From positions 12,388,275 to 12,452,274 of the forward strand of contig NC_134032.1 in NCBI RefSeq assembly GCF_964204645.1: a stretch of DNA of 64,000 nucleotides, read 5' to 3'. The translations under genes were made by a program, and so were the position numbers. Shown here piece after piece: positions 741 through 44,266 of this stretch (positions within the stretch are counted from its first letter, which is position 1; each line of letters opens with the position of its first letter). The notes beneath the pieces were generated by a model, which saw only the letters and a list, made by a program, of their open reading frames with translations, was not told the DNA's origin and did no database searches. The stretch comes from Tubulanus polymorphus. Lineage: Eukaryota; Animalia; Nemertea.

Positions 741-3700
741 AACATGCCGTGTCTCAACCGATTAATATGGTACAGCGGCGGCCGGGTAGCTTCCCGAGCA
801 GCGAGGCGAACAACGTGCTGTCACCGCGCTCGTCTGAAGCTAGCGCGCTCGGCGTAAACATGGTCGAATACGTGCTGGGTTCGCCGTCGAGTAAAGAGAT
901 CGACCGCATGAGAATGAAGGGCTACGTAAGTATCTGTTAACCGATTAACCCTGTCAAACTCGAGGCTTAGAATTAAGGCCAGTTTTTATTCGATAGCCGA
1001 TCTAACAACTTTAAGACTAGTCTTTAAAATTTTCCATTGCTATTCGATTTTAAGACCTCGGCCAGTTCCGTTGGTCGCCTTTAAATTTGAATCAATGGTT
1101 ATTGAATCAGTCATATTGAATCAATACTTAAAATGAGTTAATACGTAGTCAGGCGTTATACCCGGAACCTGTGGAGCTGGCTTCAGTCTTCATTAAACCA
1201 CATGAGTTCCCTTGAATACGTTGTTATGTATATAAGCTGCAACTGGGTCAGTGCAGTCCGGTTATTCAGTCGAACTGTTCTACAAATCAGGCTTGTGGAG
1301 TGTAACTGCCGAGTTAGCTTAAACTATTGTTGAATTTGCTTGAACTACAGTTGAATTGACCTCAGTTTAAATGGAAAATTAATTCCACAGCGTGGTGTAG
1401 GGCCGAATTTGATTTTAAAACCTAAAGCTGTTTTCTTTGGTATGATGACAATTTGATCAGTTATACAGAGCCATCTATTGGCGATGAAAGTATAGTATTC
1501 GTACTGTCTGACCATAAGACCGATACATCAATGGTTATTGAATCAGTTAACTTTCAATTAATTCATGTAAAATCTTACTTGGAAGTGTAGAGCTGGCTTC
1601 AGTCTTCATAAAACCACCTGAGTCTTGAATACCTTGTTATGTATGTAAGCTACAACTGGGTCAGTTCAATCTAATTGGTCAGTCCAACAGTTCTGTGGAT
1701 TAGACCAGAGTAAACTTAAATTACTGTTGAATTGACCTGAGTTTAATAGGAAAATTAACTGGTTGCTCCCAGCGCGTAGGTCGGAATTTTAATTTTAAAA
1801 CCCAAAACTGTTATGTTTGGTATGATGACAATTTGATCAGTTATACAGAGCCATCTATTGGCGATGAAAGTATAGTATTCGTACTGTCTGACCATGTGAC
1901 CGATACATCAACATACAAAATAGATAAAATGTATCTTAAACATCTTGAGTCGAAAATCATGGACATCAGTTTAGATAGTTAACCTGAACGAACCAAACAA
2001 TTAGTAAAACTGTTTCGTTTTTTGCTCGTATAGGTACCGCAAGTGCAGGGCGATCCGAATCACCCGAAAGTCGACATCAAACAAGGCAAACCGCCTTCGC
2101 CGTTCGAGCCCGATAAAAACGTCGTGGACGTCAAAGAGACGAATGGTATGATACAGAACGGCGTCGACGATGATAAAGTTTACAGGTGAGAACACGAGAA
2201 ATTATTATTCATTAGGGTTCCTGCATATCTGGGAAAATCATGGAATTCTTTGGACTCTCCTCTTGTGTAAGTGGTACAAGGAACCTCTGGAATAGTCACC
2301 AGTGAGGATATCTTTGTTTAAACCAGGGAATTTTTGGTCAAGGGTCATTGAAAATCGGGAAAATATCATAGGATTTTGTATTCTCTGACCTGTTTGAGCG
2401 CTGATTCATGTGTAGGGTGTGCCAATCGAAATTCAGATTCAACTGACCCGAATTAAGAGAATTGACCTAGATAAATTTACCTATTTGATGAATTTCCGTT
2501 TTTAGGTCACAACCGCAGCAGGTTCAGCCCGGTAAATATATGGTCGCCCAGCCGGCGTTCTGTCTGGTAACTAGGCCGCATCCGGGAGCGCCAGGTGGCG
2601 CGGGCGGTAACAACGGCAGTCGTCAAACGTCGCCTCAGGATGACGAGGTCAAACAACAGCAGATGATCGAGAATCAACGATTGATGATGGGAGGCGCCGG
2701 TAAACCGGAGGATCTGCTGCAGGGTCAGCCGCAGCTGATGCAGCCCGGGTTACAGCTCGACGCGCCGCAGTTCGACCCACAGCTCGGCATCGACCCGGTA
2801 CAGTTCGATTATTCGAACCCGATCGTGCCGTCGATGGATAGCCCGAACTTCGGTGGAATGGACTATAATCAACAGGTTAGTTGATTTACTTATTCCTAGG
2901 TGGTGCTGTTTATCAAGAACGTGAGCCGCGTAAGGTTCTGAAGATGTCACGGAAAATCAGGCAGGGAAAACTGACAAATAATTCAAGGAATTAGAATTTT
3001 ATTGATGTCTTAAGTTTTCCGATGACACTTCTAATCTCTGGATCGGAACTAAGGCATTTTAGTTGGCGTTACTAGAATTGAGTGAATGATGACAAGTGAT
3101 TATGAGGAGAGCCATCTATTGGCAGTGATATGTACCTTGTATTCGTACTGTCTGACCTCTGTTAATCTTAACACGCAGGGGAGATAACTGTAGGAGGTGA
3201 CTCTAGGAGGTGGTTATCGTGGGGTATCAACCTCCTTAGTAAAACATTCGTACTTAAGTTGACGAATGCCTCGGGAATTGGGTATTGACCTCCCTGATAT
3301 TGTCTTCCTGATTTGAGATATTTCGTCATGAGCTATCCACCTCTACGCCTCCCTTAGGAGATATAAAAATCTCTGGTAGCTTGTAGGGTGCGTATTCTCA
3401 GGGGATCAAATAGTAATTGTACGTATGGTACCCGCGTTATATTGAATCTTATCTTTTTGCCTTACAGATGCAGATGCAGCGACAGCAACCGATCGCAGTT
3501 TTAACGCCGCAACAATATGCAGCTGCCCAGCAACAGCAACTCGGTAAGTAGAGCCACGACGCCTTCTATCTGTCGAAAACTTAACTAAAGATCTTCAAAA
3601 AAAAAAAAAAATAGAATTTGATGAAATCAAAGCATTAGATATTTTTCCTTAGAGGTGGGGGTTTATTTTCTAATAGTTTTTTCGTCGCTTGTATTTTTGG

Positions 3701-6700
3701 TTGTGCGGTGCGCATGCGTTTTACAACATTTCGAACTATCATCTACGCTATTTTTTTTTCGATCGAATGATTTTTTTTCGAAGATGCCATTCCGAATACT
3801 AGTACGTTCTCGTAGTTCTTCGCTGGAATTTGAAACGGAGAATAATTCATTTCGACGAATTGAATTCGGGTGCTACAGTATCTGCCATATGATGCAGTTC
3901 GGTGTCCATCTACTTAACCCACTGTTCTGCGTTTCGCGCACCTGCCCTATTAGACTGCCCAGGCTCTGTTCTGGCCTAGCTGCCTGCTTAAGTTGACTGC
4001 CCTGTTCAACCCTACTGCCCAGAGGTCCTAACCTTTACTGTTTCTGGGTCACTACCCACCCATGCTGGAGAGTTAAAGAAGGGACTTACAACTTAACCCC
4101 CCGTCCCCCACAATATTTCATCCCATCTGGCAGCGAAATATGAAGTACACATATTCCTTCTCACGTTGATAAGTTAATGTTAATTACTGATATAACTACC
4201 ATTGCGCTTCTAGAATAGTTACTGTACTCATTTGAGGGCTTTATTTCTTTATTTCTCCTAGAAATATGCCCAAAATCAATCGGATTCATTTCCAGTCCGT
4301 TCTCAATAAAACAACCATTTTCGATGCCAGTTTAATCTGAATTTGCGTTGAAAACTACTCCCTATAACTAATGACAGGTAGAAGTCAGTTATCGTGGTCT
4401 TCGAGTACAATTTACACGTTGCAGTAAATGCCGTAATTTCCGAGTGTCGGGAGTGTTCTCCGACTAGTTGATAGGTGGCGTGAGCGACCGTCATCATCTT
4501 GTGCAAATGCGCTGTCGATGATTTACAATTTTAAATGCATGGCTTCGTCGTTTGTTCTCCGTTCGTTCGTCGTTTTTCGTTTTTAAACGTTTTTCTTCTT
4601 TTTTTTTTTTTCTTTTTTGTTGAATGTGTTTTTTATTATATTCAATATTCACCGTGTTCTACTGTAGGAACGTCGTACGTTATCAATGCAGGTCAGGATC
4701 CGTACGCAGTCGGCATACCAGTCGCAGGTCAGATTATATTACATTTCACACCACTAGGTGGCGTTACTGTAGCCCGTACGTAGTGTAATAATCGGGTTCG
4801 CGCGCTTGCCTGCTCGGCATTTCCGTTAGAAGTCATCGGAAAGATTCGTTTTCCGATGCGATTTCTGGGCCCAGTTCCGCAGTCTTTGAATGATCGAAAA
4901 ATGAATTTATTTTTTGACTGACAAATATAGGCGGGTTTTGATTGAACGATTTAGGATTAGAAATTGGTAGAGCTTGTACTGGTTGCAATAAATGCTCCAG
5001 GGTCCAGTTCCACAGTTCTCAGTTAAGACTTGACCCTGGGTTAAAACATTGAAAATGAACTAACTTTAACTCAGAGTTAACTCTAACTCACAACTGTGGA
5101 ACTGGGTCCAGAAGAGTATTCCAGAATCAATGGAGGCAAATCAAAATCTGCCTTAGTCATCTAACTTGCAAGTCTTCCAAAATTGTGAATTATGGCCACG
5201 GCAGCATGGTCAGCGGGCCTCAGTTCGATAAATATAACTATAATTCTGACATGAAAATGTATTGAGAGTAACTAATTTGACTTGTAGAGTTAAAAGATTC
5301 TGACTTGATTTTGCGGAACTGGATTCAGGATTTAGGTCGTAAAAAATCGCGGCCAGGCGGCAACAAATTTACGAAGTCATTTTTCGAATAATAAAAGCCG
5401 AGCTTCGCCGTGCTGCTGAGCCGTAATCACAGTCAGCACTGTTTTCAATCGGGCCTCAGTAACGACACCTTGTCAGCAGTATTTTTATTTACATTCAATT
5501 GATCTTAGATTTTAAAAAAAGAATATTCACCTTAAACTTACATGAATTCAAACCGTAGATAAAAATTAAAATGATTTTTAAAATAATCGTAAATTTCTGA
5601 AACAATCCATACCTTAAATCAATAGTTATAACTGTTGTCATTTTTTTCTAGAATGAAATTAGTTCATTTTTCCGGGCGAGGGGTGGGGGGTGTCAGTAGT
5701 GACCGTTTAAAAGAATCCTCCTAGATCTCGATGTGTTGGTAGCGTTAGACTAGTCTCCTATATCTCACAACGTCCACCCGCGTCCTGTCATCGCGTCTCC
5801 TTATCATTGTCACGGTTACGATTGTTGTCATCCGAGTTATTGTTGTTGTGGTAAAACCAAAAATAAAAATTACTTAACAAATTCAAAATTTCAAAAAACA
5901 AAAAAAATTTTTTTTCTTTCCTCAAATATTCCCTCCTCTCTCGTTATGTTATGCTCTTTTTTATCTCTCTGCTTGAATCTTGGATTTTTGTCTGTAGGCT
6001 TCGTTTAATTTGTGTCGTATATATTTTGCGCTAGCTTCAATATCGGTGTGTGCTTTTGAACTGTCGCCCGCCTAATGCCGCTTCTAACGCCTATAGCTGA
6101 AAAAAATTATTTCCATTCTTTCGTTCAATTTTGAATTAGATTTTAAATTATTCGAGGGTCATGTTTTTTTTTTTAAAACTATTCTCGTTGTTCGTCGTAA
6201 CTTTTACGTAGTGTGCGTATCGTGCCAGTAGATGGCTCTGTTCTAGATTTTTCGCGTTTATTCGAGGTTTACTGACTGGTCGGGTTTTTTTCTTCGCGCA
6301 GGTCCCGCCGTCGTCGGTCCGCAGTATTACAGCGTACCGTGGGGTATCTACCCGGCGAACATCGTTCAACAGGGCCAGAACCCGCAAGGGGGCGTCCCGC
6401 AGCAACAGCAGTTGATACGCAATCAACAGGGACGACCGTTGACCCCGTCGCAACAGGATCAGATCGGCTCGCAGAATAACGGCAGCGTTCAACAGATTCA
6501 AACACCAGGTATGTGGTTAACGCCACTCAAGTGATGCGAACACCAGTAGCCATATTCATAAAAGCTTACTAACTTAGTTAGAGGCTAACTATAGGTTTTT
6601 TTTAACACCCTTTACCCGCCAAGCGCCACGCAGGGCATTATAAGCGGGTTCGATGTTTCTTTTTCCCAGTGGGGGAGAGACGAGAGAAGAACCTTCGACC

Positions 6701-9700
6701 AAGAAACTCCGTCGCCGCCAGGGTTTGAACCCATAAACCCTGGATCGACGAGACCAGTGATCGGCTGCTTTAACCACTCGGCCACTGCGTCTCTCAAACT
6801 ATAGGTAGTAAGGAACTTAGCAAGAAACTAGGCTTAGTAAAGTTTTATGAATAAGGTTACAGGTACTTCTTAGTCAACACACCCTCTTGTATGAGACACG
6901 ACACGTTCAATAAGAAGTGATTCTTAGTTTTACCATGGTAGCCTACAATGGACTTTGTTATGGATCCCCTAGCAATGGACTAAATCTTGGATCCGAAAAC
7001 ATTAGATCTCTGGATGTTGTTCGAATAATTTAACATGGTTTAACTGATGAAATGATTATATATTTGTTCTGTAGAGAATACGGTATATTTACCGGGAGCT
7101 GGTTATCAGATATTAGCGCCGGCGTACTACGACCAGAACGGACAGTTAGTGATGGGTAACGCTCGCGGTATCGGTACGCCCGTACGCCTCGTCTCCCCGG
7201 CTCCGGTTCTAGTAAGTGGCGCCGCCGGACAACAAGGTACGTAACTAAACTCGACCGGCACTAGAACATACGAAAAATTTGGCTCTTAGAGACTTCTTTG
7301 ATGGCTGCCCACTTCAAATCTCCGTATGTCATCGAATTATGAATTGAACATCCGACCTATACTGTCGTACCGATCGGATAGTGACCTCGTAGGGGGATTT
7401 ATGGATGCGGACATATTTACCGCAAAGGCATTGTCATACATAGGTGATTAAATGATATCATTGGGGGGGATCTCGGAGGCGGCCGTCATTTCGGAACAGT
7501 CTAAAGAGCCATCTTACGACGAACGCAATTCGTATTATATTCGCGCACAAATCATTTAGAATTCATGCATAATATTTTTAACGACGATCTTAACAAACGT
7601 AACGAAATATTCAATAGTGGAAAAAAATGTCACGAGCCGTATTTATTCGTCATTATATCATTATCATAATAAATGCACTTATTGCTTCGCACCGACTAAA
7701 TATATCGAACTCATTCATTTAAAGATGAGTATCCTCCCTCGGTTACTGTGGTTTAATAATTTTCATGAAAATTACTTTTTTTGTACGATACATTCAAAGA
7801 GCCTTGGGCTTAAGTTTTCATTTGAGATAATGACCCAGTTCCACAGTTACAGCTAATTTTAAGTCCCACTTGTATGTTAGCTTAAGTCAGCGGACAGTGG
7901 TTTCGCTGTAGTCCGGGGTCTGACAGTGGAACTGGGCAGGTGGGGTTCGGGGAGAATTGGACCGAGTTGGTTTTCTATTCGTCCGCCCGAGGATTTTCGG
8001 TGGTGTTTTAAATTCGCGGTATTGTTTTATTTATATGATTACAGCTTACACGGGAAACAGTAACCTTGGTTACACGTCTGCTAATAACAATTTATTAACG
8101 GCCGCCGGCAATAACCCGCAACAGACTGGTTATGGTAATAGCAATACACCACAAGGTGGCATAGGTTCAGGTATGCACCCCCTCGACCCCCTACCTAAGC
8201 TTTCTCTCTTTCACCAAAAAAAAAATTTTCAAGGTTTCGAAATATTTGGTCATCAGTCTAAGATAGTGAAGTTTAATTTCGAAAAATTATCGATTTCGTG
8301 AAAAAGCAGGGTGGCCACTTAACTGAAAATAAGGAAATTTTGTCAATGAAAAAAGCAAGAAGAAAGCTAAATGTCAATGAAATTCGTTAAGATTGCTGGA
8401 TCTCTCATAAAATCAAGTTTTCATCTTTGTCTTAGTATTTGACTGTGTTAATTGATAACATGCATGACAAGGGGGAGGGGGAAAGCAAGTCAAATAAAAG
8501 TGGCCACCCTGAAAAGCTTTTTGTGCTGACTGGGTTCGTGAATTAAAGCGATTCGAAAACTGAATCGAACTTTTTTTTTGTGAAATATAAGTCCATTTTA
8601 TGCGTGAAATATATATATTTTCACGTCGCACTTTATTCAGAAAATCGTCACGTTTTTAATATTCGATCATAACTTTTTACTAACACATACGACACCAGTA
8701 TAGTTATATTGAAATGCTTCATTTTAATCGTAACTGAACCTTTCACTTGAATCGCATCAGTTTTGTTAGTGTTTCGTATAAAACTGTTTCGGACGTTGAA
8801 AGGAAATAAAAGTTGCGCAAGTTCAGCTACTAGGACTGAGCTGTGTCAATTACTGCAATTCAGTCTTTATACACTTGCTACAAATAGATAACTGTTTTCA
8901 ATGCCAGTAGAATTTTATTTCTGACTTCAAATAGAGTGATTTCTTGTTCACTTTGAATGGAATGATTATTTTTCAAGCGAGAAGGGCTTGGTTTTATTGC
9001 GGGACCGTTAAATAATCAAACCACATGGCGTAGTTCACAGCCCAAAGGCCTAGTTTATCAAAAATGTTTAAGCATTATGGTTGAGTTATGCACTTGCGGC
9101 TTAGACTTAAGCGGCCATTCAAGTTCTATGGCCAATCCAAAAAAGTAAGGGTCGATTTAGGACCACATGGACATTTATTAGCTAGGCCCGAGGCCTGGTT
9201 TAACAGTCAGGCTCTTGAGTTTCTGAGTTGAACACAAAATATCTAAGGGAATGATTTCTCGAAAGTTTTTCTGCTTATAGGTTTCATCACTCTCGATATG
9301 AAGTCAGGAGATAAAATTTCTCGGGTATTTTTACCATAACTATGAAAATGACAATGTATTTTTCTCTGACCGGCGTGTACGTGCGTGTTCGTGTGGAAAG
9401 TCGGTCGGTCGTTAGGAATTCAAATTTAAAATCAACGTCTCCGTCGTTTTCTATCGGTAGAGTTTCTGTCTGGATTGTCGAATCGTCGCGACTCGCTGTC
9501 CGAATACAAACTGAACGAATTCAAACGAAGTCAGATGCCGATGAATCAGTACTACAATTCGATGGGAGGTGGTGCCAGCGGCTCGCCGGCCGCCGGTCCG
9601 ATGGGACTGGTCCAGTCGGCTCAGTCGTTGACGCCCCCGCCGTCGCTCAGCGGTTCAAATTCCAATTTGAGTCTCGGTGGAAAATGGTGGAGCAGCGAAG

Positions 9701-12700
9701 GTGCGTTTTTCGTCTTACTTAACAAAACAAAAAAAAAGATTTGTTCTTAACGTCATTTTTTGATTAACACAGTTTTTTTAACCGTAATTTGATTAAATTT
9801 TCGATCAAGTTTTAATTATTATATTCTATTCTATTCATTATGGACTAGCCAACATGGCTTTGTGGCTTCAGTTTCATTTAGAATTCGTCGATCTTTGGTG
9901 AAGATACGCTTTAATTTACGCGTAACACTGGAGAAGCCAATGCGATGATGTATACAATGAAGCTAATTCGATGATGCTAGAATTATAGTTTATACCAAAA
10001 TTGTTTTTCAGGATTAGGCGGTAGCGGATCGCGAGGTTACTCGGCAGCGCCCGGGGCCGAGGCTAAATACCGGGCCGGACTGACCAGCAGTAGCCCGTTC
10101 TTCGGTAACGGTATATTCAACACTCGCAACATGGCTCGCGGGTAAGTAATCTGAATCAGCAGCTCAATCTATTGAACCGAAACTGCAATCCAGCTCCTGA
10201 CAGCGACTCAAACGGCACGTTAGGCGTTTATATTGCGAATAGAAATAACGTCTATCTCTTACACCGGTGGCTCCATCTATTGAGTCTCGGGTGAACGTAT
10301 AGATACATAAATCCCCCTGGTGACGGAATTAACTTACAGTTAAACTCTCAGTGCTGATTGATTAATACCTGTTGCCATCTTTCGAAAGATATAAACTAAC
10401 ACCAATCCACAAAGATGCAGTGTACTTGCAGTCAATCTATACATCGCTCTGCGGTGTAGACTCACTGAAAGGGTTAATAGTAGTCCATATAAATGACCCT
10501 AATAGATCTCTGAAGATGGACCTGAATTGTCTTTGTTAAGTCTTCAATATTACGGGCCTTATTTACACCCCCTCTCACCTTATTAAAAACACTAGCAAAT
10601 CAGCAATCAGCAAAAAATATGTTAATTTGTTTTTTAGATCGAGTTTGTCGAAAGAGGTGACAGTCGGTCGCAGTCGATTGTTGGAAGATTTCCGCAACAA
10701 TCGAATTCCGAATCTGCAGCTGAAAGATTTGGTGAATCACGTCGTCGAGTTCTCGCAGGATCAACACGGCTCTAGGTAGGAGGACACGAGATTTTAAAAA
10801 AAATCGGGATGAGTTTCGTAGATAATCGGGGTTGAATAATCACTGGAAACATTTTGATATTTGCCATCATTGTGACTGTGGTAGTTGACGCTCGGGATGA
10901 GGATGACGGTTTACCTTGATACCCAGTCCGTGCAACGCAGCCCAGCAGTTCCATTCTCTGATATGTTCATGGTTCTTAAGAAACTGTCAACAAACAACCA
11001 AGGAATTAGGGATTTTTAGGTTTCACAAGTTTAGAACGGGTGAAGAATTTGGATTGTCGCAGGTGTTCTGAGAACCAGGGAAATTTCTGTCATCGGGTTT
11101 GGTGATGTTCATAGAGAATGAGATTTAATTAGCCAGATTTTGATTTGAGGTAGCAATGATTAATTCCGGCAAACTTCTAAGTGAAATTTTCTGAACTGCT
11201 TAAACAGACAACCAACTACATCCTCATGTGTCTAATGAGCTGACTTTATCGTACTCTGTCACCCTTGTCCAGTGCTTGATCCAATGTGCCCCTAATGACA
11301 GTATTAAAAATCTAGACAGTTGCAGGGAATTAAGTTTCGCGTATTTGATTCGTGTTTAGGTTCATCCAGCAGAAACTGGAACGAGCGACGCCCGCTGAGA
11401 AAGCGATGGTGTTCAACGAGATACTCACCGCCGCGTACAGCCTGATGACCGACGTCTTCGGTAACTACGTCATTCAGAAGTTTTTCGAATTCGGCACGCC
11501 CGACCAGAAACAGACGCTCGCTCAGCGAGTACGCGGGCACGTGCTGCCACTCGCGTTGCAGATGTACGGTTGTCGCGTGATCCAGAAAGCGTTGGAATCG
11601 ATTCCTCCCGACATGCAAGTTAACAAGGTACGAGAATTTGAATTTCGTAGATTTTCATCAAATGAATCCTAAATGTTGCTCAGCTTACATAGGTCAGTTT
11701 GCTTCGTGTCCGAGATCTGAACTTTAGGTACCAAGTTCTTATATATAAGTTAGTTATTGATAAATAGAAATTGGATGGATAAAATAGGAAATGTAAGGCA
11801 TTAAGTTTTTAGATACATTGGTTGTTGGGCCAAAATAGGTTCAGCTCGATCTTACCTTGAGTTCAGGCTGATGTAATACCTCCTAAATAAATCATTTCGG
11901 AATGAACTAGATAGAACCAGATAAGTGTATTGTATTTGTATGTTTTGCGTCGTTTAAAAAGGTTGAAATTGTTAAAGAATTGGACGGCCACGTTTTGAAA
12001 TGCGTCAAAGACCAGAACGGAAACCACGTCGTACAGAAATGTATCGAATGCGTCGACCCGAAACATCTACAGTTTATCATCGACGCTTTCAAAGGACAGG
12101 TACGTGCTGGTGAAATAGATGTATTGATATCTACAGTTATAATTGCATGAAATCTCAGACAGTTGGTTACAGCGTGCAAGGCAAACTTGTTCCAGTTTGT
12201 TGATATTTAGTTCATAGAAACCCTGATGATTATGATTAGAATTTCACACCTCGATTCGAACATGTGAGTTGTGATAGGAAGAGTATGAGGGGTGAGCAGT
12301 GAACTGGTGGATAAATGCCATGGTGACAGTTGAGATCCCATTCTTACCATGATGTTCATCTGCCAGTTAACTCAGCTCAGTCTGTCCAATATTATTTGTA
12401 ATAAGTCACTGGTCAGTTAGTCCCTGGTCAGCCTGTCACTGGAGTTGGTCAGACGTCACAGGTCTGTCAGTTTCTGTTGCCACTGACCAGCCTAATAGTG
12501 CGCTGGAGTCCAAAATTGACAGCGATCAGTCTTATACTGGTCACTCACTACTTAAGTGATGACTGGTTAACTGTATTTAGGTGCATGCGTTATAAAACCT
12601 GTTGCTCACTAGGTCAACTATCCACTGCTTAACTCATAAACAGTTTGAGCAAAAATGGCCCCAGAGTTTTTTCCATCTATTCAATTATTAACAGCCACTG

Positions 12701-15010: not shown

Positions 15011-15139
<129 letters not shown>

Positions 15140-15148
15140 TTCGTACAT

Positions 15149-27681: not shown

Positions 27682-28149
27682 ATGGCCGATGATGATCATG
27701 ATTTCACCAACGCCGATGCCGGTGCATCCAAAACCTACCCGCAGCAGTGCTCGGCGCTGCGTAAGAACGGCTACGTCGTCATCAAGCAACGTCCGTGCAA
27801 AATCGTCGAGATGTCGACGTCGAAGACCGGCAAGCACGGCCACGCAAAGGTGCACCTCGTCGCGTTGGATATTTTCAACAATAAGAAGTACGAGGACATT
27901 TGTCCGTCGACGCACAACATGGACGTGCCGCACGTGAAACGTATCGACTACCAACTGATGAACATTGACGACAACTTCTTGACTTTGATGTCCGACGCCG
28001 GCGAGCAACGCGAAGACATAAAACTGCCGGATAACGAAATCGGCAAGGAAATCTCGTCGAAGTTCGACGCAGGCGAATCATTCTACGTGACGATCTTGTC
28101 GGCGATGGGCGAAGAGGCCGCGGTCGGCACGAAGGTGATGACGTCGTAA
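27682..28149 (+). CDS. EIF5A: Eukaryotic translation factor eIF5A (155 aa)
   Basis: MADDDHDF...[13 protein letters not shown]...[12 protein letters not shown] (hypusine lysine)...; CDS without introns; 5' UTR intron 26534-27651. Confidence 0.98.
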
Positions 28150-32055: not shown

Positions 32056-32089
32056 CTTTGTAGACCTCCGAAGTTGATGACAACAACCT

Positions 32090-32626: not shown

Positions 32627-35600
32627 ATGTCGCAAGGTAGGTGTTTTATCTCGCTCTGTTTCGCTTAATATTTCTACTAAAATAACGGTGCAATCTTAGA
32701 ACTTTTACTTCGACAATGATCATAAACACCCGGTCTACGTTAGACGTTGAAATCGTCGTGAAATATCGTTCATAAAATCTCTAAATTCGATTTTGAAAAT
32801 GGTTAATTGTTTCGTGGTGCGGCGAGCGATGCCGGTCCGCGCCATTTTGCCACGTGTGACGTAGACATTATAAGCTCGGTGTTACACATTGATTGGTTGA
32901 AACGTGTTGTTTGAGTAATTAACTTTCTTTTAATTAATTTTGCTGCTAATTAGTAAAAATTGTAAGATTTAATTATACCTGTCTGTGGCTCATTTTAAGA
33001 TCTCCAATTCACCGCAAGAAGAAGGTCTTAAAATATGAAAATCCAGTAAATTACTGATAGTATCATTAATTATTAGTAATTAGGCAATTACTAAAGAGTT
33101 AGATTAGTCTTTTTGATGGGCAAATTATGAATGAAAATGGAACTAAAGTGTAAAGGTGTCTATGGCATTTAGCCTTAGCAAGATAGATTTGACTTGTTCG
33201 TTAGATTAGGCTTATATAGGCCTATTTGTTATTACTAGATACAATTTTTTCGGCTCAAAACTATGCAAAACTAAGAAATCCAAACTTCCTTCATTTTGAT
33301 GGTGAAGAAATATTGAATAAAGAGTGTGGCTCCAAAGGATTGTAATTAAAATTTCTGAGCTGAAAGTCTATAAGTCTTGGGAATTTATTGAGAGATTGTT
33401 AGATCGTATAAAATCAAATTTTTACTGTGTTAATTACTTGGACTTAGCAGATCTAGTCAGGGAAAATGACGTGCATCGTCCAGGGAAGGGCAAGTCAAAT
33501 ATAAGTGACTAACGAAGAATTCTATTTTGTTTATTTTCAGGAACGAGTGTTTTGGTGTTTTTTGCGTTGACGATCGTTGGTCAGGCGTTGACGCCGTCGT
33601 CGTATTTTACGACGGTCGATCAGCAGCGTCTGAAAGCGATATTCGAGGCCGCTCAGCCGTACGCCGACCTCGTACAGGCCCACTACTCGATCATGGGTCT
33701 CAAATTACTCGGCTCGTCCATACCTAAACCTCAGGTACATACATTTATAGTGTTATGCTTTTTGAAAACCTGGACTTGGTTCAGAAGTTTTGGATAGATA
33801 GTTCGATAAGTTAATTTTTTCAATGTTTTAAGGCTCGGAGCCAATTCCGTAACATCTTGATAAAATTCCTTAAGTTAGAAAATTGTTGAAAATATCTACT
33901 TGAAACGGGCTGTAGAACTGGGGTGGTATTTCTGGGTGTGGTTAATATGTTCCACCATCCAATTTAACCACAGCCATCTGAGTAAAATGCGTTGGTGAAA
34001 AACGGCTCTATGGCCAAATCTAAGCTTTGTGCAACTAGCAATTTGTTGCATGTCAGTCAAATGCATTACCCGGTCTCTAAGATATCTAAGTTGACAGTAA
34101 GTTGAACCTCTTTCTTGGCACAGTTTACTGGTTTCGAACGTTAACTGTGTTTATTTATTTACGAGAGGAACAAAAACTTGTGAAATCGTCTTCGGTTTCT
34201 AGCAGAAAAGTTGTTACGAAACCATCCTAAACTTTCACTACAATCGACAAAATATCATTGACGAAAGCGCAGAATTATTAACACCAACAAGTTTACCAAA
34301 TGAAGACATTTTCTGGTCTTGGGATTTCAGTTTTTTTTTCTCCAGTTAATTGATGGGTAGAAGTTCTGAAGTTTCTAGAAATGAATGGATTCTATTTGCG
34401 CGTTTATTGAAGTTTAATTACAGTATTTGTTGTAATGTTTTGTAGGACGCATGCAGCGTAATTAAAGCCAAGCTAGAGACGAACAGCGTGGAGTCTTTAT
34501 TTCATGGTTCCTCGGCCGCAAAACAGCTCGGAAACTGCCAGGTATTGCATCACCTTTCTTTGACAAAATTCTGGAAATTGAATCATTCGACACAACTGAA
34601 GATGATTTTTTTTTGTCTTGTGTTCCTTGTAGCTTTCTGCCGGAAATGTGAAGGATCTGTTAACGAGCCAAATCAAACCTGAATCATCAACGCTTGTCAT
34701 CTATCAGGCATTTTTCGCGCTGAAGAACTTAGGATTGTCCGGTAAGCTCCCAGAAAAATATGAAAATCCTCTTTAATCTAAGTTTTTCGTAGAAGATAAA
34801 ATCAGTTGTATTTATTAAACTTTCTTGTGAGAAATTAAATTAAACAAGAAAGTAATGCAGTATCAGTGGTTCAGTTGTCTTCAATAAGATCATAACGTTA
34901 AGTGATATTTTTCCTGGCAGGTCTACAGCGGAGTTGTGGTGGTTTAAACACCCTGTTCCCTAGACAACTTGCTAAATAAAAAGATGTTTTTAAGTTTGAC
35001 CATTTTTAACTGTTCAGTGTTAATAACGGATTAGGTAACATCAAACATAATATCATGAAATCCTTCTACATTTTTAGTACAAGATAAAAATGTTCGTGTT
35101 TGATTAGATAATGTGATACCTATGTTTCGATTGTCTTCAAAAGCAATCATAGCGTGAAGCCTTGTTTCTCAGGCAGGTCTACAGCGGAGTCGTGGTGGTT
35201 TAAACACCCTGTTCCCTAGACAACTTGCTAAATAAAGAGATGTTTTTAAGTTTGACCATATTTAACAGTTCGGTGTTAAATAATGGATTAGGTAACATCA
35301 AACATATATCTCAAATATCCAGGGCCCAATTGCGCAGTGTTGAGACTTAATGGTCAAAATGAGTTCTATAACTGGATGTCCTAAATATTTAATCTTAGAA
35401 ACATTTTATTTTGATGATTAATATCATTTCTATGTTGTTATTTCAGTTGATGCTGCCGCGGTGAGCAAGTCTCTTTTGGCTGCCCTTAAAAAGGACGACA
35501 GCGCATTGAGGTGGGTTTTAAATCCGAAAAGTCTGCCATTAATTGCTTAGTTTCACAGATATGGATCAAATCCTTATTCATATGCAGCATTTTCCAGAGT

Positions 35601-38600
35601 TGAAGTTGAAGCGATCTTTTGAAACATGAAATAATTGATGATTTATTTGATATTGTTGTTTTACAGTTACGCCTACGCGTTCCACGTCGCTGCAGAGTTA
35701 ACCGACGTCCAGAAATTCTACGATTTAATCGAAGATGTCATCGCTCAGGCTGATGAGGTCGATGAGGAATTCTTACAGGTAACGAGTAGTCCCTTCATGA
35801 CCCTTTCCCCGAGTCCGTAAACTTATCTGATTGCCCAACTAGCAAGTGATAGTATCAACTGAATGTTTTAATGTCCGTTGGTTTCACTAGCTCTTCTTAA
35901 CGGAGAGAATTCTTGCTGAGATAAATTTCGAGGAGAAACTGACTGGTGGATCTGTCTTTAAAACCAACCACACGGTTAAGTAACCCTCGTACAAATTCAG
36001 TCTTCGATCGCAAGGAAATTTCTTATGCAAATATCATAGACACCTATTTGACTATTGAGTTTAATCCTGCTTTTTCTCGTGCTCACATTAGTACCAATAT
36101 GCGTCAGTGCCAGTTTCATGCTGGCCATGTTTGGTCCAACCATAAATCTCGGACCATGCTGAATTTTCGTATGGGTCAAAATGTAACATGCTAACTTGTT
36201 CTGGAAGTGACATGCCCTGATTGCCAAAGCATTCGTTGTTTTGATAGAAAAAATGATTTAGGACATCTCTACATCTCTGGCCTCTCAATGGACCCAACTC
36301 GGCTTAGTGTGATTGCGGCTATTGTATTTGTCGATTTAAAAGTTTTAGAAGAATCTCTGAGGCAAGTGTGGAAAGTGGTGGCTGCTCGTTTCTGGCAGTC
36401 ATCTCTTTAATTTTTCACAATGAAAAATTCTTGCCAAATCAAATTTTCCGGGGTCGAAACGACCTGTGATTCTGACGCACACAGATCACGGGATAAGATT
36501 ACCCGAACAACGACTCATACGCCACCTATTAGTGATTATCGTTACTTTGGATGATTTGATGATTCAATTTTTCGATTCTTCCTTTACAGTTTGAAGGTGG
36601 TTTGTTCACGACTTCATTGGTTTTGGATGGTGCTTACAAACTGGCAGCCAAGGCGAATAAAGCCCCGACTATACCGCAAGTAAGTATCTGCACGCGGAAG
36701 TCCTCTCAACCCCTGCGTAACGAGTATATTTGGGTTGTTTTTGCAAGATGAAATAAATTTTTCAGCTCTTTCTAACTTAGATTTATAAATTTACAGAAAA
36801 ATTGAGAAAGTTTCATTTGAAATTTAGAGCAGTCTTGGGGGCCAGTCTCATCCATTATAAATCTGGCTCACTTGCAGTGTTTTCAATTAGATATTAAAAA
36901 GAAGCCTGGTCCCTTTGAGAAACAGGAGGGTCCCATAATATGTCACAGTCCCTGAAAGGAAACCTGGTTTGAAAAAACAGGCGGGTCCTCTACAACCGAC
37001 TGACGGGTCTGGGACCTGGCTCTTATTAAAAACACTGACTTGAAGCCTCGAGTCTCGATATAACTCCTATTTGGTCTTTAAATGAATGCCTCATCTCATG
37101 CCTCCCGTTGGAGAGAACTTTACAGCAGAAATGATGATCGTTCTAGGGCAGACTTTGATAAATCTGTGATGCGAAAAACGGAACATAATCCTACTGATCT
37201 GCTGTAACGAAATAAGAAAAAGTACAACTGTTCATCTCGGTTGTTAAACGATGCGTTCTATTTTCAGGATAAAGTGGTGAAATTTACGAACTATTTCCTC
37301 AGTCGTAAACACGTTCACCAGCTGCAGGCGGCATCGCACCTGCTCGCCGTTATCAAATCATTCACCGACAATAAATACCACATCCCAGTGGCGATCACGC
37401 TTGCCAGTCCGGTTTCCGTGTCCGAGAAACAACAATTAGTTCAGGTGAGTCGAGCGTATTGACTATGAATTTTGAATTCAAACTAGATCCTCAAGTTCTG
37501 CGGTTATCAATATTTGATTAGAAAAGAAATGAAGATTCAAATGACTGTCCAACTATGTACTTCGATTTTGAAATCGACCCTCCTGTCTTTTGACTGTCTA
37601 CCGCAATCCAGCTCCTGACAGCGACTCAAAAACAGCTCGTTAGGCGTTTATATTGCGAACAGAAATAACGTCTATCTCTTACACCGGTGGCTCCATCTAT
37701 TGAGTCTCGGGTGAACGTATAGATACAGTGATAATCGATAACGCTTCGTGAGGTCGGGCGATGTAGGTGTATTATGTCTATGATACCGTTTGTTGTTTGT
37801 AGGTTCGCGTGACCGATTTGTTGGGTAAAAGTATCGGTAAATTGACGACGACGGCCGACTCGGCGCGACACATCGCTGACAACGCGGTCGTGTTGAACAA
37901 AAAGCCGTTCAAACCTTCAACAAGCGATAGGTAATAAAGTTTTCAATTAGAATGCGTATTTGAGATTGTGTTGCCGGTGGCTTGTATCCCACCAGTCAGT
38001 TTTAACTAATTGGCATACCACTTTAGTGCGTCTGCACTGCGGCACGATATATTGTTAGTAACTGATATTTCACTTTGTTTGACAATAGAGATAAAATCAA
38101 ATGATTAATTATATCAATACACTGTGGTGCGGCGTACTAGCAATGTCCATCACTGATTAATACCCGTGCTGTGGTGTAGATGCACTGAAAGGGCTAAGTC
38201 AGGCAAAATGACAGTAGACTTGAATGAGATGGGTAAAGGGGGTGATTTATTTCACATTTGCACTTTTGCTATGATACTTGGATTTCGTTCAGTGATTATT
38301 TATCTCGAAAGCTTTCGAGGTGAAATTAGGCTATTGTTGTTCATACTTAATGGTAATTCAAACACGCTAGATTAGACATTCGAGAAATATTGAAAGATTA
38401 AATTGAAAAGTCTAAATAATTAAAGTAGACTTGAGTAACCACTTGCGTACTCCTGGTGGATCCTCATTTTCCGCTGATTAGAATTCCATGCGAAACGTAT
38501 TTCGAAGTTGTGTTGTAATTCTGCAAGATAAGAAAGTTACTCGAAAAGTTAATATTCCGGTTACTTTTTAGACACTTGCTAGATTATCAGTTGCGGGGGT

Positions 38601-41600
38601 ATCTTTTGAGCCATTCGGATTTGTTTGAAATACCCGTTTTGGTCAAGCAGATACCTTACATATGAAACTATTGATAATATATGCTCCTAAATCGTTCATT
38701 GGCTCCATCTATTGATCGAAAACTGCAATCCAGCTCCTGACAGCGACTCAAACGGCTCGTCAGGCGTTTATATTGCGAAAAGAAATAACGTCTATCTCTT
38801 ACACCGGTGGCTCCATCTATTGAGTCTCGGGTGAACGTATAGATACATCTGAATTATTGCGTTATAATACCGGGGTTCTTACACACTAGGGACTGTCACT
38901 GCTTGAAAATTCTAGGGGGGGGGGGCGAGGAATTTTGATTTTATCGCATCTTGTTCTTGGTCCAGTGACACAATAACCTCTTGATAAGAAACACTGAGGA
39001 TATCTTACTATTTCATAGAGGAATTACCAATTGCCTGATCTTTAAGAATGCTGTGAAATTATTTTCGGAAGAGTTTAATGAATTGATTTTTGAAATTTCA
39101 GCTCGCTTTACGAATTGAACTTCATGCAAGCGAAACCGGCGCGTGGATTCTATAAACTGACGGTTAGTGCGGCACCGACTAAACCCGACAAACGTCTCAT
39201 CGGAACGTCTGGCGCGAACATACAGGTTAAAGTCACCACGCAGGTGACCGTCGAGAATATCGAAGTCGGCGTCGCCGATAAAGATCAAACATCGGCCGCT
39301 AAAAGTATCAAGTGAGTATCGTAGCGTTTCGACTCTTGTCAATTCGGACCCAGTTCTACAGTTATGAGTTAAAGATTTGATTCGGTATTGATAATGAACT
39401 AAATTCTACCCAGAGTTGACATCGAATTCACAACTGTGGAACTGAGTTTCGTAACCTTGTATCAATACCTCCAATATCTTGTAGGCTGTAAACACTCCTA
39501 AGATATTTACCTAAGTTTGCTCTAATTTCTGGTGTTTGTCATTCATTTTCAAATAAAAAGACGTCTGCTTAAGTATTGGAACTCGCATGAATCGTGGACA
39601 ATTAAAAAACTGAAAGAAAGGCGATAAAGTGTCATATATCTCTGGGGTCCAGTCTACAGACTCGTATTATTCATTCCTAATTCAATACTCCTCTGAGCAA
39701 GATTATTCCCCTACGAACTTGGATATTCGTTCATAGGTTTATTCCTCTTGCAATATCAAGTATTTCTCAATGAATTGTTTCTCGATTCAATAAATCGATT
39801 ATTGCATCTTATATCAATTCATGAGTAACATCCACTTCTTTGCATCGATAACTGTTTTAAATACTTATGAATTATATAATATAGAAGGACTGAATTTCTC
39901 TGTAAACCTTTCACTTGAATCGCATCAGTTTTGTTAGTGTTCCGTATAAAACTGTTTCGGACGTTGAAAGGAAATAAAAGTTGTGCAAGTCCAGCTACTA
40001 GGACTGATCTGTTTTAATTACAGCAGTTCAGTCTTTATACACTTGCTACAGTATCTTCAATCTTCTATTTACTGTTAGAATTCTAGCTAGATTGGGTCTG
40101 GGGCACATGTAAAAGTCCATGATTAAAACTTTGCTGTTCACATCCTGAGAAACACACTTGTTTCCTGTGATGAGCGTTTATAGTTTATGAGACCAGATAT
40201 AATTCTTAGCGCTTGCGTTGTGCTGATTATTTCTTAACTCTAGATATATAGATGGCGGGGAGGTGAGGTGATGTAGATATGATTCCCGATGATTAGATTT
40301 GTCTTACACACTGATTCGTACATGCTGAATTGTGTTTGATAGGAAGAGTCTGAGGGATATTTGAAAAAAAAACATGTACTAATTGACTAATTACCCTCCC
40401 CTAATGCGTACGTAATAAATGAATGACCCCTAGAGGGATTGAGGGGGTTGGGTAGAAGTTTGAGATAGTTCCCGATGATTAGATTTGTCTTACACACTGA
40501 TTCGTACATGCTGAATTGTGTTTGATAGGAAGAGTCTGAGGGATAAGTGTCATCTATAAAACCAACCTGTTTCCACTGATTAAAGCATAAGTTTTTGAAA
40601 GTCGTCACTCTTCGGTCACAGTTTGTATCGATGCGAATATTCTTCAAACCGAGTTCATCGTAGATGATTAAAATCAGTTGTGCTTAATGAAAAAGTTATG
40701 CGTCATCAGTTCAATTGTCTCAGTATAGAGCGTGAAGCCATGTAACTAGTTTATAAGCATGGGTGGCTTCGCGGAAAGTCAAATAAAATTCTCAAGCCAG
40801 TTGGTGGTTGGCACCAATATGCTATTATGTTGGTTTAGCTAGTGAATGGCTACTGGTGGACTTGTTAAGGCATCTGCGTAAATTGTCGCAACTATTGTCT
40901 CGTTATAAACGAAATGAAACGATTTTCTCGTTGCAGATTACAACACCCGAATAAAGCGGCGAACGCCCTCGAGGCCGATCACCATCAGAAGATTCTCATG
41001 AAATTCCAGCTGAAAGACAAACTCAGCGGCAATTTGATGTTGGCTCATCAGACGTTCGTCCGTCTGACAAATGTCGACACGAAACAAGAAATCATCTTCA
41101 CGGCGAGCCCGGAAACATCGAAATCTTATAAATTTACGCTGGTTAGTTTTCTATTTGGTTATCGTGTCTATTTTCTCGAGCAAACTCGTTTCATCCGGAT
41201 TGTGCAGATCCAAAATGATCCATATTAATACTACTGGAACTGGAATTTCTGCTTAACTGGATGAAATGATTCGGTCGATGAATCGATGTTGTTCGAGTTA
41301 GAAGGAAATGTTGAGAAATGATGAATGAAAAAGGGACGTAATTCCGAATACAAAATGTCGATGAACACTTTAACTAAAATCTGATCTCTCATTTCTCCAA
41401 CTCGGTATAATTTGGCCCACATTTTCGTAGATTCTATTTTAATTCACAATTTTTGACGCCAGTTACATTGTCATGGCATGTATTGAAATACCACTTTTGG
41501 ACTTGACTATGCCTCTGCATGAGACCCGTAAAGACCATCTTAGCCAATCATGTGCAACGTAAAGACCACAGTGTTACATTTGAGTCTCTTTCAGATCTTG

Positions 41601-44266
41601 TTCTATCCATAATGTAAAATGTTGTTAACATATTTTGTAGGATGTCGGAGCTAGTGGTAAACTATTCAGTTGGATGTCCGGAACCTATAGTTTAGAACTG
41701 ATAGTCGGAGATGCCGTCATTGAGAATCCATTCTCCTGGCATATGGTAAATAACTTCTACCTACATATACCTCCGATGCGACTCTTACTCTGTCATTCTT
41801 GTGATTCAAATCTGACCAATTTGTTGTTGTATTTTTGTTAAGGCTGATTTGAAACTGTCGTTCCCGAGCGGTTCATCTTCGTCTAAACAACCCGAAGATA
41901 TCCACTCGAAAAAACCGGAAATCAAGGTCAGTATCTAAACAGCTAGTCTAGGGAATCAGAAAAACGTAGAAAAAAATCGTGGATTGTGGCAAATTTGCCC
42001 AAAAAAAAATCAGAAACCGGAAAACTCAGAGAACTTGAATATGCTATTGACACATGTTTACTTATCAATATGTGATTCAATGAAAAATGAATGAATTGTA
42101 ACATGTGTTTGTTTATGTGTTTTTGTAGCACATGTTCCGTCCAGCTGAGAAGAGACCCCCGATTCTCGTATCGAACGCGTTCACGATACTCGTACTGTCG
42201 CCGTTCCTCGTTCTGATTATTCTCGTAAGTACCTTAACCCCCCACACCTAACCCTCTATCCCACGGGAGGCGTGGTTTAAAATCTACTCGCCGTTTACTG
42301 AATCATAAGATGCGCAGTAATGTCATCGGTTTAATTGTCTTTAAAGAGAATCATAGCGTGAAGCCATGTTTTCAGTGAAACTAAGTGTTTGAAAGTTTGT
42401 ATTGACATGGATTTCTGTCACATGGTGCAGCTGTGTTTAGTAGCCAATGATTAACAAATCTAGTCAAGCTTACACTAATTTTCGACCTCCAATAGGTTTG
42501 AAATGAGGATAACCCCGCTAATATGAGGCTACACTGAACATTCAAAACTATTGAGTGCTGATCGGTTTGGGAATATTTGTAAATGGCTCAAAGCAGTTGT
42601 GTTTAACCTGAAAGTTACTTGGTATCATCGGTGCAATTGGATTCATAATGATTCAAAGCCATAAGCTATATTTTTGTTTTCACTCATGAATCCATAAGCG
42701 AATATCCAAATCGCGACATTCAAAATCATCCCTTTGCAAAGAGTTCAGACTTGGTTTTGGTGTCTGCTGCTGTTGTCCGTTGCAGAGACTGAGTCTGGTT
42801 AGAAATATCTTTTTCTTAAATGAATATATATATATATATATATATTGTTGATTTCAGTGGATGAGAATAGGAGTGAATGTATCGAACTTCCCTCTGTCAA
42901 TCAGCGCTGTCGGGTTCCACGTGTGTCTGGCAGGTGAGTCTCTTATCCGTTCTAGTCTCGATTCCGCGATTATTGGCGTGATGATTTGAAGGGACGTAAT
43001 TCCGATTTAACGATGAAGATACGTTTTTCATTTTAAATCTGACCGATATTTGCGACGACATCGAACAATTTTTCGATTCTTGTATAAATTCGTCGAGGAC
43101 CCAGGGTCAGTTTCATGAAAAAGCTTGGGCTTAAAACGGTTAAGGTTAAATTGTTTTCGTCTTTGAAAAAGTTGTGTTTATCTTTTTTTGTGAAACTGAA
43201 TCCTGATCTTGATGAAATAGTGAATCAGTATTTAAATTGCGATAATCTATTTTTATCTTGCAGCTATCTTTGGTTTGTATTATTGCTATTGGGCTCATTT
43301 GAACATGTTCCAAACTCTGCGCTATCTCGGATTTCTGCTCATTCCGACTTTCATATTCGGCAACCGTCTATTGAACAGTATCGCAGCCGGCAAAAAGTAA
43401 GTATAACGATATTCATTTAAAACTGTTGGGATGTGGTGAGTGGGAGGTCGGAGAGTATTGAGGGAATTTCGCAATACAGTATTGCCAATCTATAGACACT
43501 ACTGAATACGTGCTAGCACAATCTCTTAACTGTAATTTACTGGAAAGCGATTGTTTCAGTTATATAGGGGATCATTCATTTATAACGTACGCATAAAATT
43601 TGAATTTCCCCTAATGCGTACGTAATAAATGAATGACCCCTAGAGGGATTGAGGGGGTTGGGTAGAAGTTAGAGATAGTTCCCGATGATTAGATTTGTCT
43701 TACACACTGATTCGTACATGCTGAATTGTGTTTGATAGGAAGAGTCTGAGGGATATTTGGAAAAAGCATTTACTAATTGGAGTTCTTAATTCTTAGATAG
43801 AATTTTGCTATACAGTTGAGAATTCATAATGTACCAATTCTTTAACTTAAAGCTTTTGAACAGGGTCGAACCTTTCACTTGAATCGCATCAGTTTTGTTA
43901 GTGTTCCATATAAAACTGTTTCGGACGTTGAAAGGAAATAAAAGTTGTGCAAGTCCAGCTACTAGGACTGAGCTGTGTCAATAACTGCAGTTCGGTCTTT
44001 ATACACTTGCTACAATATCTTATAATATTTATTTACACAGTAATTATATCTAGCTAGATCAGGTCTGGGTCGCGTATGGAAGTCCATGATTAAAACTTTG
44101 CTGTTCACATCCTGAGAATAAAAATTTCTTCTGATGAGCATTTATTGTTATGAGACTTAAGAAGTTTAAAGAGTTGCTTAGAATTGTGATTTTTCATTAA
44201 AACTCAGCGTTGACATGAAAATTAAGATGAATTTTTCAATTATTTCATTGTAGGAAGACAAATTAA
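32627..44266 (+). CDS. RPN2: Ribophorin II (oligosaccharyltransferase subunit), 17 exons
   Basis: Exons 32627-32636, 33541-33734, 34446-34541, 34633-34741, 35447-35510, 35667-35778, 36590-36679, 37268-37444, 37803-37930, 39102-39311, 40937-41141, 41641-41745, 41843-41926, 42129-42224, 42858-42933, 43264-43396, 44254-44266. Signal peptide then LTPSSY, LQFEGGL, HQTFVRL, LIVGDAVIENPFSW, KPEIKHMFRPAEKRPP, three TM segments, LNMFQTL. Confidence 0.96.
34915..35050 (+). ncRNA. Box H/ACA snoRNA, SNORA9-like, copy 1
   Basis: gcaggt...acttgc hairpin with pocket CAGC / CTAGA fitting 28S UCUAG-U-A-GCUG, 14 nt from H box AAATAA; gatgtt...aacatc hairpin with pocket AAGTTTGA / TAGGT fitting 28S ACCUAU-U-C-UCAAACUU; ACA at 35045. 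Confidence 0.75.
35171..35307 (+). ncRNA. Box H/ACA snoRNA, SNORA9-like, copy 2
   Basis: Tandem near-identical copy in the same intron; ACA at 35302. Confidence 0.75.
35840..35996 (+). ncRNA. Candidate box H/ACA RNA, target unassigned
   Basis: agcaag...cttgct hairpin, H box AGATAA at 35919, cgagg...cctcg hairpin, ACA at 35991. Confidence 0.55.
37601..37730 (+). ncRNA. Box H/ACA snoRNA, SNORA10-like, copy 2
   Basis: Near-identical to 10182-10310; ends 72 nt before the 3' splice site. Confidence 0.7.
38722..38850 (+). ncRNA. Box H/ACA snoRNA, SNORA10-like, copy 3
   Basis: Near-identical to 10182-10310; ACA at 38845. Confidence 0.7.
39905..40053 (+). ncRNA. Box H/ACA snoRNA, target unassigned, copy 2
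   Basis: Homologue of 8737-8885; ACA at 40048. Confidence 0.75.
40115..40193 (+). ncRNA. Box C/D snoRNA guiding 28S Um2415 equivalent (SNORD143/144-like), copy 1
   Basis: gtc-c-ATGATTA, guide TTGCTGTTCACAT before D' CTGA (40145) pairing 28S AUGUGAACAGCAG, C' GTGATGA, D ATGA, gac. Confidence 0.75.
40284..40357 (+). ncRNA. Box C/D snoRNA with guide TGATAGGAAGAG (28S CUCUUCCUAUCA)
   Basis: tccc-g-ATGATTA...CTGA(D')...ATGCTGA(C')...TGATAGGAAGAG-t-CTGA-ggga with terminal stem. Confidence 0.8.
40470..40543 (+). ncRNA. Box C/D snoRNA with guide TGATAGGAAGAG, tandem copy
   Basis: Identical to 40284-40357. Confidence 0.8.
43680..43753 (+). ncRNA. Box C/D snoRNA with guide TGATAGGAAGAG, copy in last RPN2 intron
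   Basis: Identical to 40284-40357. Confidence 0.8.
43869..44017 (+). ncRNA. Box H/ACA snoRNA, target unassigned, copy 3
   Basis: Homologue of 8737-8885; ACA at 44012. Confidence 0.75.
44080..44158 (+). ncRNA. Box C/D snoRNA guiding 28S Um2415 equivalent, copy 2
   Basis: aagtc-c-ATGATTA...TTGCTGTTCACAT-c-CTGA...TGATGA...ATGA-gactt; ends 95 nt before the 3' splice site. Confidence 0.75.

Follow-up and report, generated by a model that had tools for sequence, protein, structure and literature searches.

Two unrelated neighboring genes of the nemertean Tubulanus polymorphus, encoding Pumilio and RPN2, hold between them three families of predicted small nucleolar RNAs (snoRNAs), and apart from one decayed relic these copies are the whole complement of the three families in the genome. 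The genes lie on the same (+) strand ~30 kb apart within a 64,000-nt stretch of contig NC_134032.1, called the window below, and genome-wide counts were made in the 268-Mb assembly (77 contigs). To judge by its Pfam domains, RPN2 here encodes ribophorin II, an oligosaccharyltransferase subunit. We consider it probable that the shared repertoire arose through local duplication at the DNA level followed by purifying selection, possibly with gene conversion, a judgement that takes the hosts, the copies and their predicted functions as one reading. A previous reading of the same stretch, made from the sequence only, had proposed local intron-to-intron copying between the two hosts; the local copies in two unrelated hosts on one strand are borne out, whereas transfer from intron to intron is unproven for the copies that follow the RPN2 stop codon. 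The event is of a known kind, local copying of snoRNAs from host to host, and involves no new type of RNA or system. It does give a clean example of short-distance snoRNA host switching outside vertebrates and insects, and it illustrates that a single housekeeping gene pair can hold a genome's entire supply of several predicted guides for ribosomal RNA (rRNA) modification.

The repeats were recovered by self-BLAST of the window, with a 98-bp satellite masked, and by pairwise alignments, and all three families reported by the sequence-only reading were found again at their positions, in direct orientation and on the + strand, which is the sense strand of both hosts. Family A (box H/ACA, ~150 nt) comprises A1 at 8736-8885 in a Pumilio intron whose upstream exons are putative, A2 at 39904-40053 in an RPN2 intron flanked by exons near 39102-39240 and 40937-41142, and A3 at 43868-44017, which starts 470 nt past the RPN2 stop codon. 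Family B (box H/ACA, ~130 nt) comprises B1 at 10181-10310 in a Pumilio intron upstream of the exon encoding GRSRLLED, and two copies in adjacent RPN2 introns separated by exon 37803-37931, with B2 (37599-37730) ending ~70 nt ahead of that exon and B3 (38721-38850) in the next intron (37931-39101). Family C (box C/D, ~75 nt) has one Pumilio copy, C1 at 12221-12293, between the PUF-repeat exons 11911-12147 and 12692-13132, two copies in an RPN2 intron, C2 at 40284-40360 and C3 at 40470-40546, and a fourth, C4 at 43680-43756, 280 nt past the RPN2 stop. Compared across hosts, the cores of family A are 93-94% identical, those of B 94-97% and those of C 78%, and the cores of C2, C3 and C4 are 100% identical, with mixed relationships among their flanks. 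Because the cores are 78-97% identical across hosts and the 100-nt flanks only 43-57%, against 48.9 ± 2.9% for random window pairs, the similarity is centered on the RNA with little flank, as had been described.

Families A and B both fold, in minimum-free-energy as well as consensus predictions, into a hairpin, an H box, a second hairpin and an ACA box, with fold z-scores of -2.0 to -5.0. The H box of family A is AAAUAA (consensus ANANNA) and its tail, ...GCUACA+3, places the ACA three nucleotides from the 3' end; in family B the H box reads AnAGAA, where only the free N differs among copies, and the tail is ...GAUACA+3. The differences among copies include three one-sided changes that keep a base pair (U-A to U-G, G-U to G-C and U-G to C-G), and A2 carries one compensatory pair (G-U to U-A), whereas A1, A2 and B1 have one broken upper-stem pair each. 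Family A gives a weak alignment with the SNORA7 model (RF00409) over its full length, where A3 scores 22.6 bits and does not reach the gathering score of 100, and it has both strands of the first pocket in common with SNORA7 (AUCGCAUC and UUCGGA); the second hairpin is unrelated, and we found no rRNA site that matches. One pairing of family A hairpin 2 with 28S CUAGUAGCUGG, complementary over 10-11 nt, was rejected since the 3' strand of the pocket is unpaired and the geometry fails.

The guide tests were run against the organism's own rRNA genes, which we located in the assembly (18S of ~2012 nt and 28S of ~4229 nt). C2-C4 carry cGAUGA ... CUGA boxes and a 4-bp terminal stem, and their guide, UGAUAGGAAGAG, forms 13-14 bp with 28S GCUC[U]UCCUAUCA, and in this duplex U3540 faces the fifth guide nucleotide counted upstream from the D box; on this fit, family C should 2'-O-methylate 28S U3540. 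C1 has diverged, having lost the D' box and changed the D box to AUGA, and it retains the D guide. A second pairing, of the D' region of C2-C4 with 18S AGGGCAAGUCUGGU, contains five G-U pairs and ends 6 nt from the box, and we rejected it as a guide. In C1 and in a further box C/D family of the locus, family E, the C box AUGAUUA occurs together with the D box AUGA, such that the inter-box G-C pair becomes U-A. This unusual pairing of boxes is seen at 12221-12293, 40113-40193, 44080-44158 and 42440-42532 and looks like covariation within the kink-turn.

For the H/ACA families, a target search with strict anchors performed no better than shuffled guides, and a search with free anchors gave many matches of inconsistent geometry, all of which were rejected save that of the first hairpin of family B. 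There, the first pocket forms 5+9 bp around 28S U3602 in GGGAACG[U]GAGCUGGGU, lies 14 nt from the H box and abuts a CCUGAC/GUCAGG stem, a fit equalled in only 2 of 300 shuffles with the same anchor. A 2026 preprint shows that snR37 forms pseudouridine 2944 of yeast at this site and equates it with human U4521, the predicted target of SNORA10. On the modeled pairing, family B should guide the pseudouridine equivalent to yeast 25S U2944 and human 28S U4521, near the peptidyl-transferase center, a position that is modified in yeast and predicted to be so in human; one of the guides confined to this gene pair would thus act close to the catalytic core of the ribosome. The description of family B as "SNORA10-like" therefore holds for its predicted target, of the SNORA10/snR37 type, and fails for Rfam membership, given that an Rfam search over 171 nt gave no SNORA10 (RF00264) match even at E ≤ 10 and that the best Rfam match of B is nematode ceN36-1 at 22 bits. 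A 10-mer, CCATCTATTG, occurs seven times in the window where 0.2 are expected (at 1471, 1851, 3112, 10273, 37693, 38705 and 38813, all on +); family D, a Pumilio box C/D family described below, carries it in the internal hairpin, and family B in the apical loop of the second hairpin, with B3 having it in its 5' leader as well. Its match to rRNA is weak, with many G-U pairs.

We determined how many copies of the three families the genome contains. A BLAST-type search is insensitive at ≤78% identity for 75-nt queries and missed C1 as well as D1 and D2 of family D, and for this reason a pattern search and covariance-model searches were added, the latter with model R1 for family A and R2 for family B at E ≤ 1. 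By BLAST and by covariance model alike, there are three copies of A (A1 scoring 175 bits with R1) and three of B in 268 Mb. The family C guide with its D box, TGATAGGAAGAGTNTGA, occurs four times genome-wide, always in the window, and the reversed pattern used as a control does not occur. A fifth copy of C, decayed, lies 0.5 Mb downstream at 12933131-12933199 of the contig, on the same strand and outside both genes; it has lost the D' box, has mismatches in the guide and lacks a terminal stem, and its surroundings contain no clear coding gene. The one metagenome contig found with an exact 21-mer of family B was matched by neither covariance model, and we regard the 21-mer as a chance match.

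These counts bear on whether the three families might be short mobile repeats, that is short interspersed elements (SINEs) or miniature inverted-repeat transposable elements (MITEs), or else intronic repeats that mimic the shape of a snoRNA. The absence of any Rfam match at gathering score and of a convincing target for family A would suit such repeats. However, the canonical boxes, the guides that match rRNA and the structure-preserving substitutions argue otherwise, and so do the copy numbers: the dispersed copies in both orientations expected of a SINE or MITE, which the sequence-only reading had set against its own claim in the form of hundreds of randomly oriented or intergenic copies, were not seen genome-wide, where each family has 3-5 copies on one strand and in one locus, the decayed relic of C being the only intergenic one. 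Because the copies are few, on a single strand and nearly all in one locus, we conclude that A, B and C are not SINEs or MITEs, and we give a repeat origin next to no credence.

Both hosts were identified with Pfam, for which each open stretch or exon was searched separately. The Pumilio homology domain is encoded by exons spanning 10540-14323 (+; PUF, E-values down to 3e-29), with open reading frame segments at 10540-10776, 11349-11669, 11911-12147, 12692-13132 and 14066-14323; Pfam finds PUF repeats in the last four and a weak one at the end of the first. The RPN2 coding exons extend over 33513-43400 (+; PF05817, PF23861, PF23860 and PF25147), and the ribophorin II domains follow in order from 33513 (positions 2-44 of the N-terminal domain) to 43236-43397 (positions 50-97 of the 99 of the C-terminal domain). 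The Ribophorin_II_C match of the last coding exon thus stops two positions short of the domain end, and the stop codon TAA follows at 43398-43400. Introns in the window measure ~0.3-1.7 kb. Pfam-supported exons stand on both sides of C1, B2, B3, A2, C2 and C3 and of two further snoRNA-type genes of RPN2, E1 and F1, and one RPN2 intron holds A2, E1, C2 and C3 together. The assertion that the copies are always intronic is accordingly sound for those six members of A, B and C; C4 and A3 lie past the RPN2 stop, and the decayed C copy is outside both genes.

The Pumilio exons that would lie upstream of A1, B1 and D1-D3 are putative and were named by no tool. Segments of open reading frame at 710-937, 6247-6531 and 7056-7241 resemble what we take to be conserved N-terminal motifs of human PUM1. 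A protein-atlas search with a putative N-terminal Pumilio exon gave no match, and a word-based homolog search with the putative exon 6247-6531 gave six unnamed fragments at 53-64% identity; the contig of one of these relatives was inspected and had no PUF context. Judged from these relatives, 6247-6531 shows the conservation of a coding sequence, of a gene that the relatives do not name.

For the copies downstream of the RPN2 stop codon, the splice-site sequence makes a terminal RPN2 intron plausible. A donor-like AA|GTAAGT overlaps the stop codon, and the sole pyrimidine-rich acceptor within 44018-44700 is at 44253; a putative intron at 43397-44253 (+) would contain C4 and A3 together with E2, the family E copy downstream of A3, and all three would then be intronic. 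Splicing at 44253 would change the end of RPN2 from ...GKK-stop to ...GKKKTN-stop (frame K-K-T-N-stop). The predicted K-K-T-N ending has what we take to be the form of a di-lysine (KKXX-type) endoplasmic reticulum retrieval signal. AATAAA signals are present at 43625 and 44117.

What the analysis shows is that the copies exist, on which strand they lie, that the genome confines them to this locus apart from the relic, how they fold and which boxes they carry, how their guides fit rRNA and which genes host them. Expression and processing of the RNAs, and the mode and direction of their duplication, are inferred. The mature RNAs would presumably be cut from the introns of the host pre-mRNA. Short local duplications at the DNA level would have copied them, some in cis within RPN2 and others in trans into the neighboring host, at different times and with C the oldest across hosts; the flanks would then have decayed while purifying selection kept the RNAs, and gene conversion probably helped to keep the long H/ACA cores alike. 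The literature recognizes cis-duplication as well as trans-duplication among the ways in which snoRNAs evolve. Within RPN2, the alignments plainly point to copying at the DNA level, because A2+E1 and A3+E2 form a two-gene block, in which an apparent 3' flank common to A2 and A3 is in fact the family E element, and because C3 and C4 are 99% identical over 149 nt of 5' flank and core, including 73 nt of 5' flank. The direction from RPN2 to Pumilio is weakly favored because B1 is closest to B3 and RPN2 holds two B copies.

Several findings weigh against local duplication under selection as the account of the shared repertoire. No Rfam family claims A, B or C at gathering score. Neither hairpin of family A has a convincing rRNA target in strict-anchor, free-anchor or anchored-shuffle searches, and none was found for the second hairpin of B. 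C4, A3 and E2 are located beyond the RPN2 stop codon. Across hosts the flanks are at random identity, with co-duplicated flank demonstrable only to ~25-60 nt, and each Pumilio copy is slightly defective, A1 and B1 through the broken upper-stem pair and C1 through its AUGA box and lost D' box. In addition, A1, A2 and A3 are about equidistant, yet the flanks of A2 and A3 are 70-87% identical and A1 shares none; these distances and flanks are better accounted for by flank-less copying or by gene conversion than by a single simple history of duplication. The earlier description of the elements as snoRNA-shaped stands on the folds and boxes of A and B and on the boxes and rRNA guide of C. The copying had also been called recent, which is uncertain because identity between C1 and the RPN2 copies is as low as 78% and the cross-host flanks are at random level; C1 is either much older than the RPN2 copies or has escaped homogenization.

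It is possible, though we doubt it, that the A and B copies are paralogs of long standing, which repeated ectopic (non-allelic) gene conversion over 30 kb has kept similar within their cores of 130-150 nt and nowhere beyond. This explanation overlaps with local duplication under selection and differs in that the duplications would be old and conversion would be the chief cause of the crisp boundaries. Cores that are 93-97% identical between flanks at random level speak for it, as do the star-like differences among A1, A2 and A3 even though A2 and A3 have flank in common, the fact that Pumilio B1 resembles B3 more closely than B2 does, although B2 and B3 share a gene, and the identical cores of C2, C3 and C4 with their mixed flanks. 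The short family C (73 nt), only 78% identical across hosts, is also what would be expected if short homology escapes conversion. Yet 3-4 substitutions per branch leave the comparison without statistical power and do not allow mosaic tracts to be demonstrated, B2 and B3 are less alike than B1 and B3 despite being in the same gene, and strong purifying selection alone could yield the same picture. Flanks at random level around such cores thus fit both an older duplication under strong selection and conversion confined to the core, between which so few substitutions per branch cannot separate.

An RNA-mediated origin, in which snoRNA or intron RNA was reverse-transcribed into nearby introns in the manner of mammalian snoRTs, would account for a similarity that goes no further than the RNA itself, for example in A1 and A3, where identity runs from 2 nt ahead of the first stem to the ACA box, and snoRNA retroposition is documented in mammals (literature). 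We nonetheless judge it very unlikely for this locus. No copy has an adjacent poly-A tail, and the longest word common to upstream and downstream flanks is ≤6 nt, so that no target-site duplication is present; B1 and B3 have a leader of ~25 nt in common outside the hairpins, and the A+E and C copies have flanks in common. All copies are in two genes 30 kb apart and on one strand, unlike random reinsertion. The snoRTs resemble the present copies as snoRNA-sized units at new intronic sites, and differ from them in the features just named, the present placement being strictly local.

Three families occur in one host pair and, bar the decayed C relic, nowhere else in the genome, which argues that new copies land preferentially close by; that three families do so in parallel hints at physical proximity as the source of the bias. 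An unlikely but more far-reaching extension is that flank-less units of snoRNA size are preferentially copied between introns of neighboring, co-oriented, active genes by neither L1-type retroposition nor segmental duplication. Candidates for such a route are RNA-templated repair and template switching that use the excised snoRNA or the RNA of the intron; alternatively, such RNA could seed conversion. If this were true, three independent families in one host pair within 268 Mb would be the footprint of a proximity-biased mechanism. A supply of guides decoupled from a single host promoter, as had been suggested, would be a reasonable consequence of two hosts, and the locus is a natural test of the independent expression of paralogs.

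Known systems offer several parallels. Human SNORD35A is hosted by RPL13A, the neighbor of RPS11. The literature describes SNORD35B, in an RPS11 intron, as its trans-duplicated paralog; as here, intronic guide paralogs are found in sense orientation in two unrelated hosts, with the guide kept. The present case differs in that three families, two H/ACA and one C/D, are common to one host pair and are the genome's whole complement, the relic aside. As in the intronic snoRNA arrays of flies and plants, the hosts are crowded with duplicated snoRNA genes, and one intron may contain several; those arrays are described within a single host, and the present case extends over two. The consensus of Drosophila snoMe28S-U3344 (RF00526) carries the 14-nt guide of family C, UUGAUAGGAAGAGU, in identical form, followed by AUGA as in C1; the guide stands ahead of the D' box in the fly and ahead of the D box in C, and with 21.7 bits against a gathering score of 50 family C is not a member by the model. 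Drosophila Me28S-U3344a is hosted in an intron of Stt3A (literature). Stt3A and RPN2 are both oligosaccharyltransferase subunits, a parallel that may be a coincidence or an old link between a class of host and a guide.

Beyond the shared families, the two hosts hold further snoRNA-type genes, for a total of at least 20 in at least 8 families (~14 in RPN2 and ~6 in Pumilio). Further box C/D families came from a scan of the two strands for sequence antisense to rRNA directly beside an NUGA box. Family D lies in 5' introns of Pumilio, with D1 at 1440-1515 (+), the identical D2 at 1820-1895 (+), the two belonging to a tandem duplication (1091-1531 and 1527-1911), and D3 at 3084-3159 (+), which is 77% identical to D1, keeps the same guide and gives a weak SNORD41 match. 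All three have AUGAUGA ... CUGA boxes, and the guide, GUAUUCGUACUG, forms 12-14 bp with 28S CAG[U]ACGAAUAC, targeting U3385, presumably the site of SNORD41/snR51. Family E is in RPN2, with E1 at 40113-40193 (+) and E2 at 44080-44158 (+) after A3; its D' guide, UUGCUGUUCACAU, forms 13 bp with 28S AUG[U]GAACAGCA, targeting U1881.

Three other families of RPN2 are likewise on the + strand. F1 (41311-41389) is a SNORD82-like box C/D gene (30.4 bits) with a guide, AGGGACGUAAUU, to 18S, and F2 (42973-43047) is a diverged copy with the same 18S guide. A Z107/R87-like box C/D gene at 42440-42532 is closed by a terminal stem of 6 bp, and its two guides would pair with 28S near 2925 and 2949. An early RPN2 intron contains a SNORA9-like, H/ACA-shaped tandem pair at 34915-35270 (34915-35014 and ~35171-35270). 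This pair has 16 nt of G-U-rich complementarity to 28S 3610-3625, adjoining U3602, the predicted target of family B. The proposal of one shared repertoire is therefore correct for A, B and C, the only families common to both hosts, and does not extend to D, which is confined to Pumilio, or to E, F, the SNORA9-like pair and the Z107-like gene, which are confined to RPN2. At gathering score, Rfam gave no match in the whole window, and E-value scans of the window and of sub-windows gave sub-threshold matches only; SNORD103 and SNORD85 had no match anywhere in the window at E ≤ 5.

Between the hosts lie an eIF5A open reading frame (27622-28146, +) and an mTERF open reading frame (30032-31054, -). 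The eIF5A frame is complete, with 175 codons, and intronless among intron-rich neighbors; it could be a retrogene or simply a native gene. A repeat of ~198 nt in an RPN2 intron (36875-37072, +) recurs inverted at 62400-62593 (-) with 83% identity, near a short-chain dehydrogenase gene, and a palindrome-like inverted repeat of 546 nt is found at 52865-53410; both are probably transposon remnants. The 98-bp satellite, with at least 69 tandem copies of ~94-97% mutual identity, runs from 45317 to ~52100. It begins ~1.1 kb past the last snoRNA of the RPN2 locus, where GC content and GC skew shift.

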